64,000 nucleotides of DNA, from positions 124,001 to 188,000 of the forward strand of contig NEEC01000031.1 in the NCBI GenBank assembly GCA_002189035.1, given 5' to 3'. The position numbers and the translations under genes were made by a program. The notes beneath the pieces were generated by a model. The model had not been told where the DNA came from and ran no database searches. It worked only from the letters and a program-made list of their open reading frames with translations. Source of the DNA: Utricularia gibba (Eukaryota > Plantae > Magnoliophyta). Shown here piece by piece: positions 14,200-22,500 of the stretch (its first letter is position 1; every line of letters begins with the position of its first letter).

Positions 14200-17041
14200 A
14201 TGAATTCAGAGGGCTTGTTAGCTTCAGCTGCCATCAACGTCGGCTTGGCTCTATTCATCCTCATACTCTTTTCCATCCTCAGAAACTACCCTTCTTTCGC
14301 TCCTATTTACCATGGCCGTCGCCTTTCCCACCACCGCCGCGCCGGCGCGGCTTCCTCCCTCCGCGGAGGGCTCGGTTTGGTGCCGTCGGTCGGGTGGATA
14401 CGCCGCGGCGTCGTCGTCACGGAGGACGAGATTCTTGATTCTTGTGGGCTTGATGTGCTCATCTTCCTAAGGCTCTTCAAGTTTGGGTGAGAACATGAAA
14501 ATTGCCATGGTGAAAATTACTAGCTCAGCTGATTGGAAGCGTCGTCCACAGGATTCGATTCTTCGTTGTATGCTCTGCGATCGGATTGTTGATATTGCTT
14601 CCACTCAACTATGCAGCTGGGCGCCCAACTGCACCGAAATGGAATTACTCCATGGATGCTTTCACCATATCGAACATCGATGAAGGCTCCAACTGGCAAG
14701 TTCTACTTGTGTTCTTGTGCCATTTTGTTTCAACTCTTTATCAGTTGATGTGCTTCAATGTCACCTTGTTTTCCGTGATCAAAAGCCTTTGGGTGCATTG
14801 TGCCTGCTTGTACGGCTTGTCTTGCTATGGACTGTACATGCTCTACAAGGTAGCTCATGTTCCTCAGCACTTGTTTGCCTCCAATATATGTTCACAGTGC
14901 CTGCATCTTCTTCTTTTGGTAATGTCTTTCGCTTAGGAATATGATGCTGCTTTGCTAGAGAGGATTCATCAGCTTCATGTTTTGCGACATGATCCGAATC
15001 AATTCACTGTTTTGGTTCGGGAAATCCCATTATGTGAGGAACACAATGCCCGTGATTGTGCGATAGACCACTTCTTCTCAAAGTATCATCCACACTCATA
15101 CCAGTCTTACCAGATCCTGTATGATGGAAGGGATGTTGACAAGCTATTGGTTGGTTCCTTGCAATTTTTCTGTTCTGGAGCTGTTTAGTCTGCCTGCTTT
15201 TCTGATAATGTAATTGATCTGTTAACAGAGCAATGCCAAGACCATTACAAGAAAAATCAAGGAGCTGAGGCAGAATTCATTCCATGAAACAACATATGGT
15301 GACCCCCCTTTGTTGGGATCCTCGAAAAATGAAGCACAGATAGAGAAGCAGAAAGAAGCTCTTCAAAGACTTGTTCGTGATCTACGGGTGTTGCAGAGCA
15401 AACAGCAGCTCCAACAGAAGGCAAAATGCCATCTTTCTTTCTCCATTTTACAGTTACAGCGGCTAACTTTCTTATACATTCTGTTTGCAGGAGTTACCTG
15501 TTGCATTCGTCACGTTTAAATCACGGTGGGGAGCTGCTCTGGCAGCTCAATCTCAGCAGATTCCTAATCCCACTGTATGGGTTACTGAGATGGCTCCAGA
15601 GCCGAGAGATGTTCTGTGGAGAAACTTATCGATTCCCTACAGATACCTCCCCCTTTGTAAACTCGGTGTGTATATAGCTGCCTCTTTGCTCACAATCTTC
15701 TTCGCAGTCCCGGTGACTGCTGTTCAGGGGATAGCGAAGTTTGAGAGCCTGAAGAATTGGTTTCCTCCTGCCATGGCAGTACAGCTTATGTAAGTAAGAC
15801 ACTGCAACCTTGCCTAGGTGCTTCATTCTACTGATAAGTGTTCCCCTCCTCCACTCTTATAAGACCGGGAGTGAGGTCTGTTGTTACAGGATATCTTCCG
15901 AGTGCTATACTGAATGGATTCGTGTATGTGGTTCCCTTTGCTATGATACAGTTGGCCAAGTTTGCAGGCTATGTATCAAAGAGCAGGAAGGATATAAAGG
16001 CATGCAACATGGTGTTCTATTTCCTCGTTGGGAATGTCTTCTTCTTAACTCTTCTGTCAGGATCCTTGCTGGATCAAATTGGTGAGACCTTCATCCACCC
16101 GAAAGATGTTCCCAGTCGTCTCGCCAGAGCAGCTTCTGCTCAAGTACATCAACACTTCTACTTGGTTGCTGCTTGTTGTATGTATGGTATGATCCACTTT
16201 GGCCACTCACTCACCTTCTTCTTACCTCAGGCAGACTTCTTCCTGACATACATCTTAACAAACGGCCTGTGTGGGTTCTCTCTGGAGATTCTTCAGCCTG
16301 GATTACTCATGTGGGATGCAATGAAGTCGCATATATGGCACCGTGGGAAGCCCAAACAGCCCTACCTCTATTCGCTGCCGTATTACCGGATTATCCCATA
16401 TGTCGCACTTTGCACTCTGATAGGGATGGTGTACGCTGTTGTTTCACCGTTGATCCTTCCCATTCTGGTAGCATATTACTGTATTGGCTACGTTGTCTTC
16501 GTTAACCAGGTAACCAGATCAAGCACAAGATGCACATCAGCCCTCGCTGCCTCTGTGATTCTGATGCTGAATCTTGCAATTTTCCAGGTTCAAGAAGTCT
16601 ACACAACTACCTACGAAACATGCGGCCAGTACTGGCCGTACATGCACCACTACATCCTTGTGTCGATCGTCATCATGCAGATAACGATGATCGGGCTGTT
16701 CGGTCTGAAGTCTAAGCCGGCGGCATCGTTTGCGATTATACCTCTCTTGGTATTCACCCTGCTCTTTGGTGAATACTGCAGAACTCGTTTCCTTCCAACG
16801 TTCTTCAAGTGCTCGGTCAAGGTAGCGTCTGGATGAATTCAGGCATGTTACTGGAACTTCCATATGGTGCTCAGAGGATGCTGTTGGCTTGTAGGATGCC
16901 AGAGACAGGGACGAGCATGATGAGAAGAGGGATTTGATCGAAGCCAATGTCCAGAATGCTCTTGATGCCTACTGCCCTCCATGTCTAAAGCCTCTGGATA
17001 TCCAACAGGAGGAGGAGGAGGAGTCACATGCTGCGTTTTAA
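14200..17041 (+). CDS. OSCA2.5: OSCA/CSC1/TMEM63 hyperosmolality-gated cation channel (OSCA2.5-like), 10 exons, two GC-AG introns
   Basis: MNSEGLLASAAINVGLA, SMDAFTISNI, QFTVLVREIP, ELPVAFVTFKSRWGAALAAQ, WVTEMAPEPRDVLWRNL, VTGYLPSAIL, GFSLEILQPG and YETCGQYWP. Last exon DARDRDEHDEK...ESHAAF, stop at 17039-17041. Confidence 0.93.
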
Positions 17042-17206: not shown

Positions 17207-18034
17207 CTACAAGCAGCAAAGCGGGCACTTTACTAAGCCATTTTCGTTGCACTCGATGCATCTCCTTGGTTGCTCTTCATCTTCATCATACACTTTTCGA
17301 CTGCCATCGCAGTTTGTGCAAGGAATAAACCGGATGCCGTCGCAGGCTTCACAGGGCTTCGATGGCATCAAAGGCAGGCCTTTGATCAGTCTCACGAGCT
17401 CATCGTTCTCGTGCAATTGCCTGATCACGTCGGCGCCGCCGATGTATTTCCCCTTGATGAACACCTGAGGTAAACAGACATTGGTTTCCCCGAGGACTCT
17501 CTGCAGCTCCTTCCTGTAGCCAATGTCCATTGATATATCTCGTTCATCGAGATTCACTCGAAGCCCACGGAAAATCATGCGGATACTTTGGCAATCCTGG
17601 AACGTTTTCCTTATCCCACGGAGACTAGTGAAATAAACAACAACCCTATCCTCCGTCCCCGGCAGCCGGAACAGACACTCCGGCTGCGTAAAAATGATGC
17701 TCTTAGGCGACAACGCAGATGAACCCGGTGCCGTCAACAAATTTTTCGACGATTTGGAGAGCGAGAGCGAATCCGGAGATCTAATACTGGTATTCGGATC
17801 CTCGAAGATGGAGCATAATTGGCGTACCTTCCCCCTCAAAGTATTCCCGGCCGCGACCATGGAACCAATAGAGGAGCTGTAGAAACTCTTGAAAGAGGTA
17901 CTCCGCTGCAAGGCCGGCGAATTACACAGATCGTACAAGGGCCTACCGGTAAATTTCACCGAGGTACCGATCTCGGTTTCATCGCCTAGGGTTTTCTCTT
18001 GGTGTTGCATCAATGGTTTCTTGCCATCCGCCAT
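17207..18034 (-). CDS. Glutaredoxin-like protein with C-terminal CxxC repeats (GRX-like/GRXCR type), intronless
   Basis: VVVYFTSLRGIRKTFQDC and LPQVFIKGKYIGGAD (GRX fold), followed by CEACDGIRFIPCTNCDGS...CIECNENGLVKCPLC. Confidence 0.92.
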   Translation of the reverse strand: MADGKKPLMQHQEKTLGDETEIGTSVKFTGRPLYDLCNSPALQRSTSFKSFYSSSIGSMVAAGNTLRGKVRQLCSIFEDPNTSIRSPDSLSLSKSSKNLLTAPGSSALSPKSIIFTQPECLFRLPGTEDRVVVYFTSLRGIRKTFQDCQSIRMIFRGLRVNLDERDISMDIGYRKELQRVLGETNVCLPQVFIKGKYIGGADVIRQLHENDELVRLIKGLPLMPSKPCEACDGIRFIPCTNCDGSRKVYDEDEEQPRRCIECNENGLVKCPLCCL

Positions 18035-18711
18035 GGAGACCCAATCGCCCTCAGGAGAACAGAATCCAAAGGCTCAGCAGCGCAGCTGGGGGAAGACGAA
18101 GCGCAGGCGGGCGCACAAATCGGTCGGTCGGTTTGCTTTACGAGAAAGAAAAGTAGTCCTGAATTCCACGAAGAACGCGTCTGATCAAAATGCCTCAGCG
18201 ATTGCTCTAATGTAATGTCGAGTCTGGAGGGACGGACACGCACGAACACCGTGGGTAGGTGTTAGGGGATGTGGTCCCCGCCTACCCCCTTCTTAATGTC
18301 GTGTTAATAATTAATTGACTACTGATGTTAGTTATAACCCCCCCGCGTTAAGTCAACAATATTCTGTAGACATAATATGATTTGGGATTATTGAAAACCC
18401 TACACCTAAATTCATTGGAGCCCCCCCTCCCTTCTTATGCTTTTAATGAATTTCATTAATGAATTATTTTAATAAATTTCATTAATGAATCTTGAATGCT
18501 ACTCATAAAGATACTGCATGTTATTTAATTTTCATGATTTTATGATTTTAATTAAATGATTACCTTATTCAGTTTATAGTCAATGTGAGATTCAATATAT
18601 ATGCGTCTAGATATTTGAGTTTTCAAGCATTGGAGTTTATTGAGTAATTAAGAAAGGTGTTTTGCTGATCACCATCAATTTTGAAAATCCATGTTTGCTT
18701 CTCTATCTATT

Positions 18712-18790
18712 TGGGCTTGGGCTTTACTAGGCGTTATTTTCCTAAGCTGTCCACCGCAGAATTGGGCTTCGGGTGGTTACTCAAGGCCCA
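18712..18790. promoter_or_regulatory. Four site II (TGGGCY) elements in the rps1 promoter
   Basis: TGGGCT at 18712, 18718 and 18763; GGCCCA at 18785. All lie 113-191 bp upstream of the ATG at 18903. Confidence 0.7.
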
Positions 18791-18902
18791 TTTCCTGAAG
18801 ATAGGGCTCAAGTCACTAGTGACGATAATCGATAGCTGCCGGAAGAGGGGAGGGGGGTTTTGCCGGTGAGGGAGGGAGGGATACTTGAGGTCGTTCCGAA
18901 GG

Positions 18903-19517
18903 ATGAGTGGATACATGAGCCGGTTGTTTGCGAGGTCCAATTCGAGTGTCCTGCTTCAGAGCGGAAACGCTCTGGAAGCCAAAGTGGTGCGTTTAAAGGA
19001 TCAAATGTACCTCGTCGATGCAGGTATCGGCCGGCCAAGAATCGCTACTCAGGAAGAGCTGATCAAGCCCCCAAACGCTGACGGCGCTGCCCCGTTCAGG
19101 ACTCGGGTAGGGTACCTAAAGCCGTCGAACAAGGATTCGCCGGTGAAAAATCTTCTCTTGCAACGCTGCTTCGCGGATTTGGTCACTGGCGACCCCAGGA
19201 CTAAGCAACAGGCGGCGGTCCGGTTCGAGAACATGGTTGGGGACGAGGATGCTGCCGCCGGTGACGAGCAGCCGCTCCTCCTTCCACGGCGATTCCGAAA
19301 AACTAGGGCTTTGATGGAACTGCAGAATGCGTTCAAGGCTCATAGGAAAGTGAAGGGCTTTGTAGCTGAGAAAGTTCGTGGTGGCTATACCATCGGAATT
19401 GCAGGTTATCTTGCGTTTCTTCCCGCGCGTCAGTCGTTTATCGGAAGAGTTACCCACGATCGGTTCATGATCGAAAGCATTAAAGGGAAGAAAATCATTC
19501 TTAGCCGCGGAGGATGA
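18903..19517 (+). CDS. rps1: Nucleus-located mitochondrial ribosomal protein S1 (rps1), 204 aa, intronless CDS
   Basis: The track ORF starts at a TTG; the first ATG is 18903. MSGYMSRLFARSNSSVLLQSGNALEAKVVRLKDQMYLVDAGIGRPRI...LLLPRRFRKTRA...VKGFVAEKVRGGYTIGIAGYLAFLP...DRFMIESI is collinear with plant mitochondrial Rps1 as I recall it (MSIYLSRLFPRSNSS...SGNAL...FLVDAGLGTPRI...LLLPRRFRQ...VKGFIIEKVKGGYSVAIAGFITFLP). Confidence 0.88.
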   Translation: MSGYMSRLFARSNSSVLLQSGNALEAKVVRLKDQMYLVDAGIGRPRIATQEELIKPPNADGAAPFRTRVGYLKPSNKDSPVKNLLLQRCFADLVTGDPRTKQQAAVRFENMVGDEDAAAGDEQPLLLPRRFRKTRALMELQNAFKAHRKVKGFVAEKVRGGYTIGIAGYLAFLPARQSFIGRVTHDRFMIESIKGKKIILSRGG

Positions 19518-22500
19518 GTCGCCGATCCTTTCTTCGGTTGATCTCAGGTTAGAGGGTGAATTTATATCCCTGTTGAGCTTTGCTTTGTGCTTTCATGTTC
19601 ATACGTTGAGCAAGGTGTGGCTGTACACTGGGATTTTCTGGATGAAATGAGGATACTGCAATATGGCTTACAGTGCATCATTCATTTGATAGTTCAAATG
19701 TAATAAAAAAACTGATGATCTTAAGCACCCAGTAGTCGACTAGTCATCCTTTAGACGATACTTTTTGTAAGGGCAAAGATGATGTGTATTGACATGAAGT
19801 ACATGAAATGAACGCAGGGGTAGGTATGGATATTTCATTGTTGAAGGTTAAGTTACGATTGTCCTTAAGCTAGCTGTTCGTATTTCTCAAGTTGGATGCA
19901 TTTCTAGATGATATTGTGAATTAGACAACACTCTGCACATCTTGTTCATTCTGAGGCACTCACGTCCATAACTTGTTAAATCCTTGCAGATTGACAGGAC
20001 GAAGGAAATGAAACAGTAATTAACCGACCGTTGAATGCTTTGGTTTTGCAAGAGTACAATTTTCTGCTTCTGGGATTGTAATGACATTAATAAGCTCTTG
20101 TCCTGAGGCCTGATACAGGCCATCCTGACACGGAATGATACCTCGAAAGGAAAAATAGAAGGTTTTGATTGTGTGTTTGTTCAAATTGCCCTTCTCAAAA
20201 TCAAGTCCGACAGCAGATAGCAATGGTGTCACTGATAGCAGCAACTTGACTGTTTATCGGATTGTATGGATGAATTTGCATGTTATATCAAGTCCGCCCC
20301 AACCGTGATCGTATGGATCTTCGCCGTTCATCCGGTCCGATGGCCAAATGGGTCCATCCTCAACTTGCGCCGATGGAGAAGGGAAGCATCCAAAGGGGAC
20401 TGGCCAGCAGCAGCCCATGTGAAGGAAAGCGCCACATTCATTTTGTCAAACGTAGCTGCAGTTCTCTGCTTACACGTGTTGACTTCACCTTGAGCATTCA
20501 TAATGAACTATTTGCCTTGAAGCACTTGCCCCCACCCCACCCCATCCCTCCGCTTTAATGCTTCCCTATTCAGATCTGTACAAACAGAAAGGAGGCAGTG
20601 GAAGAAATGCATTGCAAGCAGGCAGCATAAACCCCAGCTCCACCGTAACATGGGGCACTAACCCGAGATCAGATCACTCAGGGCGGGGTTTAGTTTAATG
20701 GCGCGATGAGACTGAGAGTGCGTGTCCATGTCCAAGAGGGGAGACAAGGGTCGGTATCCAGCAGGATTCGCGGGATATGGCGGGTTTCTTAGAAGGATTA
20801 TTATTGCACTCCTCTCCTCTTCTCTTCTCCCCCATTTTGGTTCTACCCCTCTGAGTCTGCTCTGCTGCCCTATCCCTGTCCCTATCTCTATCCCTATCTC
20901 CTTCTAATATCCCATCCCACTCCCACTCCACAGTACACAGTCCACACAACAACACACACACACACCCTCCCTCCTCCACCACCATCCATCTACGCAGCGC
21001 AGGTTCCAACCTCCAACATTCCAATCCTCGCTAGTGTTACTGCATCCTTTGGGGATTGGATGGAGACTAGATGGGAGGAGGAGGGAAATGACGAGACTGC
21101 CCCATTGGTGTCTGTCTGTCTGTTTCGTCGGTCTTCCCTGCGCTGCCCTCCCTGCAGTGCAGGTGTTGTCCCTGCAGTTTCAGCTGCCTGCTTGCAGTTT
21201 CCTCTCTCTCCCCCTCTCTCCCTGTCATCACGTGCTTCCCACATGATGCCAGAGGGAGCAACCCCTCTGCCCCCTCTTCCCCGGCGGCCCCACCGGCAAA
21301 ATGGAATGCGAAGCCACTCCCCAAGCAGCCAACAAACACCACACAAATCCCATATGCATTATGATGCATCATACACAGCATATCCTGAAGCAATAATAAT
21401 AAAAAAAAAGAAATGGCACTCGCCAACAAATAGTGACAATATTCATTATTCCTGGGTCGAAGAGACAAACCAGACTTTCGTGAGGGGAAGGAAATCAGGT
21501 TACGTGCTCCTTTTCTGTTCACATTTTGCAAGTATTTTTTTTTCTTTTTATTTTTACGGTGTATGAAAATCATAAGATAAGAAAAAGGGTGGCCACGTGG
21601 CAGAGGGGGTGGGGAGGATGACGTCATCATTCCGGCAGGCAACAGCGACGGTTTTATTTGAAATAGGATTTCACCCCACAACTCCCAGTCCGAATCCTTT
21701 TTCAACTTGTGCTTTTTTCAAATCCCCCCTCTCACGTCTCTTTCTCGTCTGCCTCCACTCTTCTGTCTGTCATGTCTGCTTACCCCCACCCCCATCCCAC
21801 TCATTAATGGCTCCTACACCATCGCTACCCGCACACAAGAAAAAGAAAATCCTCTCGTACGCCTCTGCTTCAACATGTAACTCTCCTTCATCATCATTAG
21901 AAGAAAGAAAAAAGAGATGGCGTGGGGTAAATACAATTGACTGTTACTGGGAAAGAAAATGAACAAGACTGTGTTGGGGTGAGCTTACGAGTGGGTGGCG
22001 AGTGAAAGAGCTCTCCGGCCATGTGTTGCATCATGATTAGTGGGTGATTATGGGGCGTTTAATGAGCAGATTCTTGAAAAGTTTAGGTCTAGTTAATGGT
22101 ACATTGAGGGGGAGGTCAGTCACGCACTCGTGCACCCTTGGGAACATCAACGAAACCGATGACGAAGCGCCAGTCAAAGCATGGGGTACTGTTCTCCTCT
22201 GTTGCAAATTTTAAATGCGATTTCACTCGTTAATCACCAACTGGATCTTGCTTGCGTCTTCCCTTGTCCTGGGGTAGTATGTATATTTCTTCTATCTCAA
22301 ATAAGCAACACAGCTCGGGTCCTCGCCTGTCAAGATCTTACTCTGCGAGCAGCTTGCTTACTTGATGTGGTCTGAATGCATGTTGTGGCCACACATCCCT
22401 ACTTTTTTCACAGCTGAGCGCACTACGCAAACTAGTAAATCGAATTTAATTATGCACGAGGACATGGTCTGTGGTTAAAGAGGCCAACGCTTGGGCAGAA

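Follow-up and report, generated by a model that had tools for sequence, protein, structure and literature searches.

A nuclear rps1 gene in Utricularia gibba: a probable functional mitochondrion-to-nucleus transfer with an unextended N terminus shared across the Lamiales

[quoted passage not shown] Mower et al. 2012 (PMC3381676) described the nuclear RPS1 gene of Mimulus (Erythranthe) guttatus (mgv1a014033m) as directly transferred and functional, several orthologs from this order are already annotated as 'ribosomal protein S1, mitochondrial-like' or 'bS1m-like', and the loss of rps1 from mitogenomes is routinely noted. In legumes, as summarized in PMC7139807 (citing Hazle and Bonen 2007), nuclear copies are present in Medicago, Melilotus, Trigonella and Trifolium, as well as in Lotus, with the mitochondrial copy eventually deleted. 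There, too, rps1 was transferred functionally and shows accelerated substitution in the nucleus (PMC7139807). The legume events occurred in rosids, are independent and much younger than the Lamiales transfer, and some genera keep an rps1 pseudogene beside nad5 exon 1 in their mitogenome. Further independent transfers were described in Conifer II and Gnetales (PMC8317393). In Silene conica (Caryophyllaceae), the product of yet another independent transfer has been detected in purified mitochondria, which shows that plant Rps1 made from a nuclear gene gets into the organelle (PMC13308715); the protein described here is known from sequence and RNA. Transferred genes without N-terminal additions form an acknowledged minority class (PMC4045975, citing Liu et al. 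2009).

We analyzed a 64,000-nucleotide stretch of the Utricularia gibba genome (contig NEEC01000031.1, positions 124,001 to 188,000; referred to as the window), to which all coordinates below refer. An earlier, sequence-only reading of this window had proposed a functional rps1 gene that was moved to the nucleus without gaining a presequence, and had suggested RNA-seq, a phylogeny including mitochondrial and nuclear Rps1, dN/dS across relatives and an inspection of C-to-U editing sites as checks. We now consider it very probable that the window carries a functional nuclear rps1/bS1m gene, which derives from one transfer predating the split of the Oleaceae, replaces the mitochondrial gene and encodes a protein imported without an added presequence. 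Judged by its placement in our tree, the gene is the Lentibulariaceae ortholog, sister to that of Genlisea, and represents the same transfer event as the Mimulus gene of Mower et al. 2012. What we add to the known case is proof from transcripts that the gene lacks an upstream exon in this species, a 3' UTR intron, the finding that the transfer is common to Oleaceae, Gesneriaceae and core Lamiales, and the observation that other divergent copies also start at their native methionine.

The rps1 CDS is located at positions 18903..19517 on the plus strand and was assigned to the mitoribosomal small-subunit protein bS1m/Rps1 by its ORF, by homology and by dN/dS. It runs from an ATG at 18903 to a TGA at 19515-19517 and contains 204 codons with zero internal stops. 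In the program-made ORF list, the frame opens at a TTG at 18885 and is closed upstream by an in-frame TGA at 18867-18869. We rejected the resulting 210-aa ORF because all orthologs start at the ATG and because first-AUG initiation fits the transcript. Two antisense ORFs within the CDS (19049-19336 and 19116-19457, minus strand) were taken as by-products of a GC-rich coding sequence. The GC content of the CDS is 0.537 (GC3 0.59), compared with ~0.44-0.47 in the surrounding kilobases. The neighbors of rps1 are ordinary plant nuclear genes in a tightly packed arrangement, namely a divergently oriented glutaredoxin/GRXCR-like gene (17207-18034, minus strand), a BT1-family transporter gene, an RSN1_7TM (OSCA/ERD4-like) channel gene, a PsbP-like gene and a RETICULATA-related gene. 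A blastn search of the window with the Prunus mitochondrial rps1 locus and 3-kb flanks (word size 7, E <= 1e-3) returned no match, CDS included, and thus no flanking mitochondrial DNA was detected around the gene. This rps1 copy sits in nuclear DNA, outside any mitochondrial DNA tract. The sequence-only reading had described a GC-rich CDS among ordinary nuclear genes and free of flanking mitochondrial DNA, in agreement with these findings. Its description of an intact, intronless ORF needs to be amended: the 204-codon CDS is indeed uninterrupted, but the gene contains a 442-nt intron in its 3' UTR.

This intron is seen in RNA contigs assembled from four runs (X1, X2, X5 and X6) out of three studies, the contigs being without direction. 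The 5' ends of the rps1 contigs map to 18847 in both X1 and X2 and to 18862 in X6, where the contig ends beside an adapter-like loose end. They define a short 5' UTR of ~41-56 nt (18847..18902, plus strand), which contains the in-frame TGA at 18867-18869 but neither an AUG nor an upstream exon, making 18903 the first AUG of the transcript. Downstream of the stop codon, the first 30 nt of the 3' UTR (19518..19547, plus strand) end at a CAG/GT splice donor. The spliceosomal GT..AG intron that follows (19548..19989, plus strand; GT at 19548-49, AG at 19988-89) appears as a 442-nt skip in all four runs, and the remaining 3' UTR forms a second, non-coding exon (19990..20398, plus strand) covered by contigs from X1 and X2. 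The X1 contig joins 18847-19544 to 19987-20398, and the X2 contig extends to 20185. RNA depth is zero across the intergenic stretches that flank the gene (18192-18713 and 20454-22000), and thus the rps1 signal represents RNA rather than contaminating DNA. This copy of rps1 is expressed as a spliced nuclear mRNA, which answers the suggested RNA-seq check, and its transcription starts at a nuclear promoter of its own, ~50 nt 5' of the first AUG. A distance of 30 nt between stop codon and intron is too short for the usual nonsense-mediated decay rule, which is therefore not triggered. Both the promoter and the 3' UTR intron were gained after the transfer.

Several minor features surround this transcript. 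The intron donor in the window reads CAG/GTTAGAG at 30 nt past the stop, and donor-like motifs are found past the rps1 stop in Erythranthe (CG/GTTAGAT, ~+19) and Salvia (GG/GTTAGC, ~+28). A TCCTCTGCT motif ~50-60 nt past the stop is common to Sesamum, Erythranthe and Salvia. Going by these sequence motifs, the 3' UTR intron may date back to the ancestor of core Lamiales. At its other end, rps1 lies head-to-head with the glutaredoxin/GRXCR-like gene (17207-18167, minus strand), whose RNA contigs reach ~18167-18169. The transcript ends of the two genes are ~680 bp apart, with zero depth at 18192-18713, and the two may have a common bidirectional promoter region. X6 contigs at 16857 and 18862 both end in an identical 22-nt sequence that is foreign to the genome, TGCAGTGCTCCGATATACGGGG (or its reverse complement). 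This sequence probably stems from a library adapter or template-switch oligo at transcript 5' ends, in which case 18862 would mark a transcription start of rps1. X1 and X2 contigs also lack a 73-nt GT..AG intron at 16820-16892, downstream of the glutaredoxin-like CDS on the minus strand. After this splice, the X1 contig continues across the same CDS to 18167. The intron also runs into the end of the RSN1_7TM ORF on the plus strand, and as the contigs are directionless, it may belong to either gene.

We compared the encoded protein to known S1 proteins. Its entire length is collinear with mitochondrion-encoded angiosperm Rps1 (~200 aa), and it keeps all 15 invariant columns. In a set of 49 Rps1 sequences, nuclear as well as mitochondrial, it retains 64 of the 66 columns conserved to at least 90%. 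Matches to NCBIfam 30S S1 equivalog models cover residues ~120-185 and have E values from 1.1e-9 to 5e-7; their scores fall below the full-length cut-offs, as is to be expected when a 204-aa protein is matched to profiles of ~390-670 positions. A Pfam search (E <= 1) returned no S1 domain, and its sole match, a sub-threshold hit to Y4YQ_C, was taken as chance. Among solved structures, the best match in a single-sequence search is Chlamydomonas bS1m (7pkq chain a, E 7.5e-8), with which both halves of the plant protein align (residues 6-44 and 129-201). A plant Rps1 profile built from 50 sequences matches Polytomella bS1m (8a22 chain Ba) with an E value of 8.7e-14 and Escherichia coli S1 with an E value of ~1e-10. 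Here, residues 120-202 correspond to E. coli residues 80-169, and residues 4-47 align weakly with E. coli residues 7-50. These matches together indicate that plant Rps1 represents the first two domains of bacterial S1, counted from the N terminus. The E. coli protein (rpsA) contains six S1 motifs in ~557 aa, whereas plant Rps1 comprises only the D1-D2 part and lacks D3-D6. In bacterial S1, D1-D2 is the ribosome-binding and D3-D6 the mRNA-binding portion. The algal bS1m proteins, our best solved-structure homologs, differ in that their homology starts at residue ~66-67, behind an N-terminal extension of ~60 aa, whereas plant Rps1 begins at the conserved motif. An AlphaFold2 model calculated from the 50-sequence alignment was poor (mean pLDDT 48.3, pTM 0.25). 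By homology, the window gene encodes a plant mitochondrial-type Rps1 (bS1m). The 204-aa protein would be translated in the cytosol and would join the mitoribosomal small subunit as a short two-domain S1, similar to bacterial D1-D2.

The proteins closest to the window Rps1 are encoded by genes on Lamiales nuclear chromosomes and have 62-70% identity and a length of 200-206 aa. Near relatives include Sesamum, Rehmannia, Handroanthus, Paulownia, Striga, Genlisea, Erythranthe, Salvia, Andrographis, Buddleja and Primulina, and the most distant Lamiales relatives are Fraxinus and Forsythia, with 56% identity. Mitochondrion-encoded Rps1 proteins (Brasenia, Magnolia, Eucommia, Prunus) are mutually close, at 77-88% identity to the Brasenia protein; the window Rps1 is only ~45-52% identical to mitochondrion-encoded Rps1, a low value that is the usual result of post-transfer rate acceleration. 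In a maximum-likelihood tree of 53 Rps1 proteins, the Lamiales nuclear copies form one clade with a support of 100/98, within which the window Rps1 is sister to that of Genlisea aurea (100/99), and the suggested phylogeny thus places it in a Lamiales-wide nuclear clade. The branching order within this clade is Oleaceae, Gesneriaceae, core Lamiales, which is also that of the accepted species tree. Clade support and species-tree branching together argue for one mitochondrion-to-nucleus transfer, which would have taken place before the Oleaceae split from the other Lamiales. All nuclear Rps1 copies group together weakly (90/97). We do not read this as a single origin, because nuclear copies share 'edited' residues that are absent from genomic mitochondrial sequences.

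Microsynteny does not extend beyond the CDS. Six-frame ORFs from the 8-kb flanks of the Genlisea, Sesamum, Erythranthe, Fraxinus and Salvia genes match only rps1 in the window, and blastn comparison of the UTRs, intron and flanks of the window gene with the relatives' loci gave no match. A YqaJ-domain gene is located upstream of rps1 in Sesamum and Erythranthe and is absent from the window. Orthology hence rests on the tree. The window gene resembles the Mimulus gene and the annotated Lamiales bS1m-like genes in its membership of the 100/98 clade, its single-exon CDS of ~204 codons and its unextended N terminus. It differs from them in that it belongs to a different family and has different flanking genes, and the 3' UTR intron is demonstrated by RNA in the window copy.

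We next consider how the protein may enter mitochondria. The start of the window Rps1 (MSGYMSRLFARSNSS) aligns column by column with the start of mitochondrion-encoded Rps1 from Brasenia (MSIYFSRSFPRSNSS) and Prunus (MSIYLSRSFPRSNSS), such that residue 1 of the window protein corresponds to residue 1 of the mitochondrion-encoded form. Since positions 18847-18902 contain an in-frame stop and no AUG, this transcript cannot supply an N-terminal extension. The earlier claim that nothing was added N-terminally is thus upheld by the residue-1 alignment and by a transcript that starts at 18847, with an in-frame stop in its 5' UTR and neither an upstream AUG nor an upstream exon. Codons 1-24 (MSGYMSRLFARSNSSVLLQSGNAL; 18903..18974, plus strand) form this native N terminus, which by composition and collinearity is a candidate uncleaved or native targeting region. 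Residues 1-24 are basic, rich in Arg and Ser and devoid of acidic residues, the first of which is found at position 25. The first 30 residues contain four Lys or Arg, one Asp or Glu and six Ser or Thr. Four to five basic residues are found in this segment in the Lamiales copies and three in mitochondrion-encoded forms, with Fraxinus also having three. A presequence-like N-terminal composition is present already in mitochondrion-encoded Rps1. We searched the N terminus for an amphipathic helix and found its maximal hydrophobic moment equaled in 614 of 2000 shuffles. As this is no better than shuffled sequence, we call only the composition presequence-like.

Import likely proceeds via the native N-terminal ~24 residues, and the protein would enter the matrix with no presequence added. 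Yeast mitoribosomal proteins offer a functional analogy from another kingdom and from other proteins: they are matrix ribosomal proteins that can be imported without a classical, cleavable presequence, often using internal or unconventional signals (Bykov et al., PMC8724765). The same precedent lends some weight to a different route, in which a functional Rps1 is imported by an internal signal, by mRNA localization or by a carrier, and the N terminus is a ribosome-docking segment only. The unremarkable hydrophobic moment and the basic nature of the entire protein (pI 10.3) fit such a route. However, the first 24 residues are acid-free, Arg- and Ser-rich and presequence-like, and, Fraxinus excepted, the Lamiales copies have four to five basic residues among the first 30 versus three in the mitochondrion-encoded forms. 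We thus regard this route as unlikely, while still the most serious competitor to a native N-terminal signal. The start of bacterial S1, with which the native N terminus of plant Rps1 aligns weakly, docks on uS2. It is conceivable, although we put this forward tentatively and would not favor it over its negation, that the N terminus of plant Rps1 doubles as an uncleaved matrix-targeting signal, making rps1 pre-adapted for relocation. If correct, this would explain why long-resident nuclear copies lack an N-terminal extension. Alignments reveal a native-Met start without extension in the Lamiales, Kalanchoe and Rhodiola copies, and also in three divergent, assembly-derived Rps1 sequences of nuclear or other compartment (P0033, P0044, P0045).

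The mitogenome of Utricularia reniformis has no rps1 (PMC5516982), the gene is completely lost from that of Mimulus (PMC3381676), it is missing in Boea (PMC4045975) and in most Lamiales mitogenomes (PMC11130359), and its mitochondrial loss was reported for Cymbaria and five autotrophic Lamiales (PMC11956449). In the absence of the mitochondrial gene from relatives, a replacement is needed unless the subunit itself was lost, and the nuclear gene would provide it. At least one lineage can do without Rps1, which was lost altogether in Arabidopsis (PMC13308715). This, together with the strong divergence from mitochondrion-encoded Rps1 (~48% identity), could point to a changed or additional role of the nuclear protein, such as plastid or dual targeting or extraribosomal RNA binding. 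We consider a changed role very improbable, because family-conserved positions are retained, selection is purifying rather than positive, the divergence matches the overall speed-up of substitution that all transferred copies show in the nucleus (PMC7139807), and the mitochondrial gene to be replaced is absent in relatives.

The mode of selection was determined from pairwise Nei-Gojobori (NG86) dN/dS, with many Lamiales pairs being saturated at synonymous sites. For the window rps1 compared with Genlisea, Sesamum and Erythranthe, pN is 0.17-0.21, pS is 0.67-0.70 and omega is 0.11-0.13. Other Lamiales pairs for which dS could be computed have omega values of 0.10-0.29, and more distant pairs are saturated. 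Within the species, we found variant rps1 alleles in two RNA runs that carry the same organism label: those in X5 differ by four non-synonymous and six synonymous nucleotide changes and those in X6 by eight non-synonymous and six synonymous changes, with no indel and no stop in either. The rps1 CDS has evolved under purifying selection. The low omega values across these relatives, the near-saturated synonymous sites and the Lamiales-wide clade agree with the proposal of a long nuclear residence under selection. The idea of an expressed but functionless NUMT, with an ORF open by chance and an incidental transcript, can draw on an intronless CDS that resembles the mitochondrial gene and on the existence of younger look-alikes in Acer and Withania (dS 0.16-0.26 and omega 0.54-0.73 against Prunus mitochondrial rps1), but is scarcely credible and effectively refuted by dN/dS and clade-wide conservation. 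Synonymous sites are near saturation while pN is held to ~0.17-0.2, and no Lamiales lineage sampled has lost the open frame, which dates from before the divergence of the Oleaceae. In addition, the protein retains 64 of 66 conserved columns, blastn found no DNA similarity between the window and the Prunus mitochondrial rps1 locus, and the mRNA is spliced. The sequence-only reading was right to prefer a functional transfer over a passive NUMT, as expression, an omega of ~0.1, the conserved columns, the Lamiales clade and the absence of mitochondrial rps1 in relatives all point in this direction. The functional transfer is a clean, completed case of organelle-to-nucleus relocation, with ~50% amino-acid divergence under constraint. 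Its value lies in annotation and as a comparator for presequence-less mitoribosomal import, and no current view is changed by it.

We also inspected the editing sites. Four codons of mitochondrial rps1 have a C-to-U amino-acid effect: S8 (TCA), P42 (CCT), P53 (CCT) and, within the 'VGSL' motif, a Ser codon (TCC) that corresponds to residue 72 in the window protein. The eight nuclear CDSs in our comparison all have L, I/V/L, L and F/Y there, respectively. Two Trinity transcript sequences of the mitochondrial type (P0055 and P0079, EukProt) have L8, L42, L53 and F at 'VGSL', and these RNA-derived readings indicate that the four positions are genuine editing sites. The four C-to-U positions are thus fixed in the edited state in the window rps1, as would result from an RNA-mediated transfer. 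The pattern is consistent with such a transfer but not diagnostic, because selection following a DNA-mediated transfer leaves the same pattern. The same edited state was described for the gymnosperm rps1 transfers (PMC8317393). P0055 and P0079 are a convenient read-out of the rps1 editing sites; both contain an internal duplication (GESLIKEQILERFF twice) that resembles an assembly artifact.

Other rps1 sequences turned up alongside the Lamiales genes. The Crassulaceae proteins (P0041 from Kalanchoe, P0042 from Rhodiola) form their own long-stemmed clade with a support of 100/100 and a stem of 0.66. The Rhodiola gene is located on a 54-Mb contig, and the Kalanchoe entry has no recorded contig. 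The Crassulaceae gene looks like an independent old transfer that is also presequence-less. A Withania somnifera chromosome (L006, 6001-6744) carries a nuclear rps1 whose single exon also encodes a 47-aa extension at the N terminus (MALTYIRSLRKMNIAKELIQ...). This copy has diverged little from mitochondrial rps1 (dS ~0.2, omega ~0.55-0.66), and Nicotiana, like Withania a member of the Solanaceae, retains the mitochondrial gene (PMC3381676). The Withania sequence is either a young transfer that acquired a leader resembling a presequence or a NUMT whose ORF was lengthened by chance. Finally, five gene models from Sesamum, Rehmannia and Erythranthe (P0035, P0013, P0046, P0048, P0050) contain rps1-like sequence that is joined to an unrelated N terminus, out-of-frame across the start or truncated, and in a Sesamum radiatum model such sequence is found behind an ATP synthase subunit O leader. 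These models look like artifacts over damaged paralogs or homeologs rather than presequence gains.
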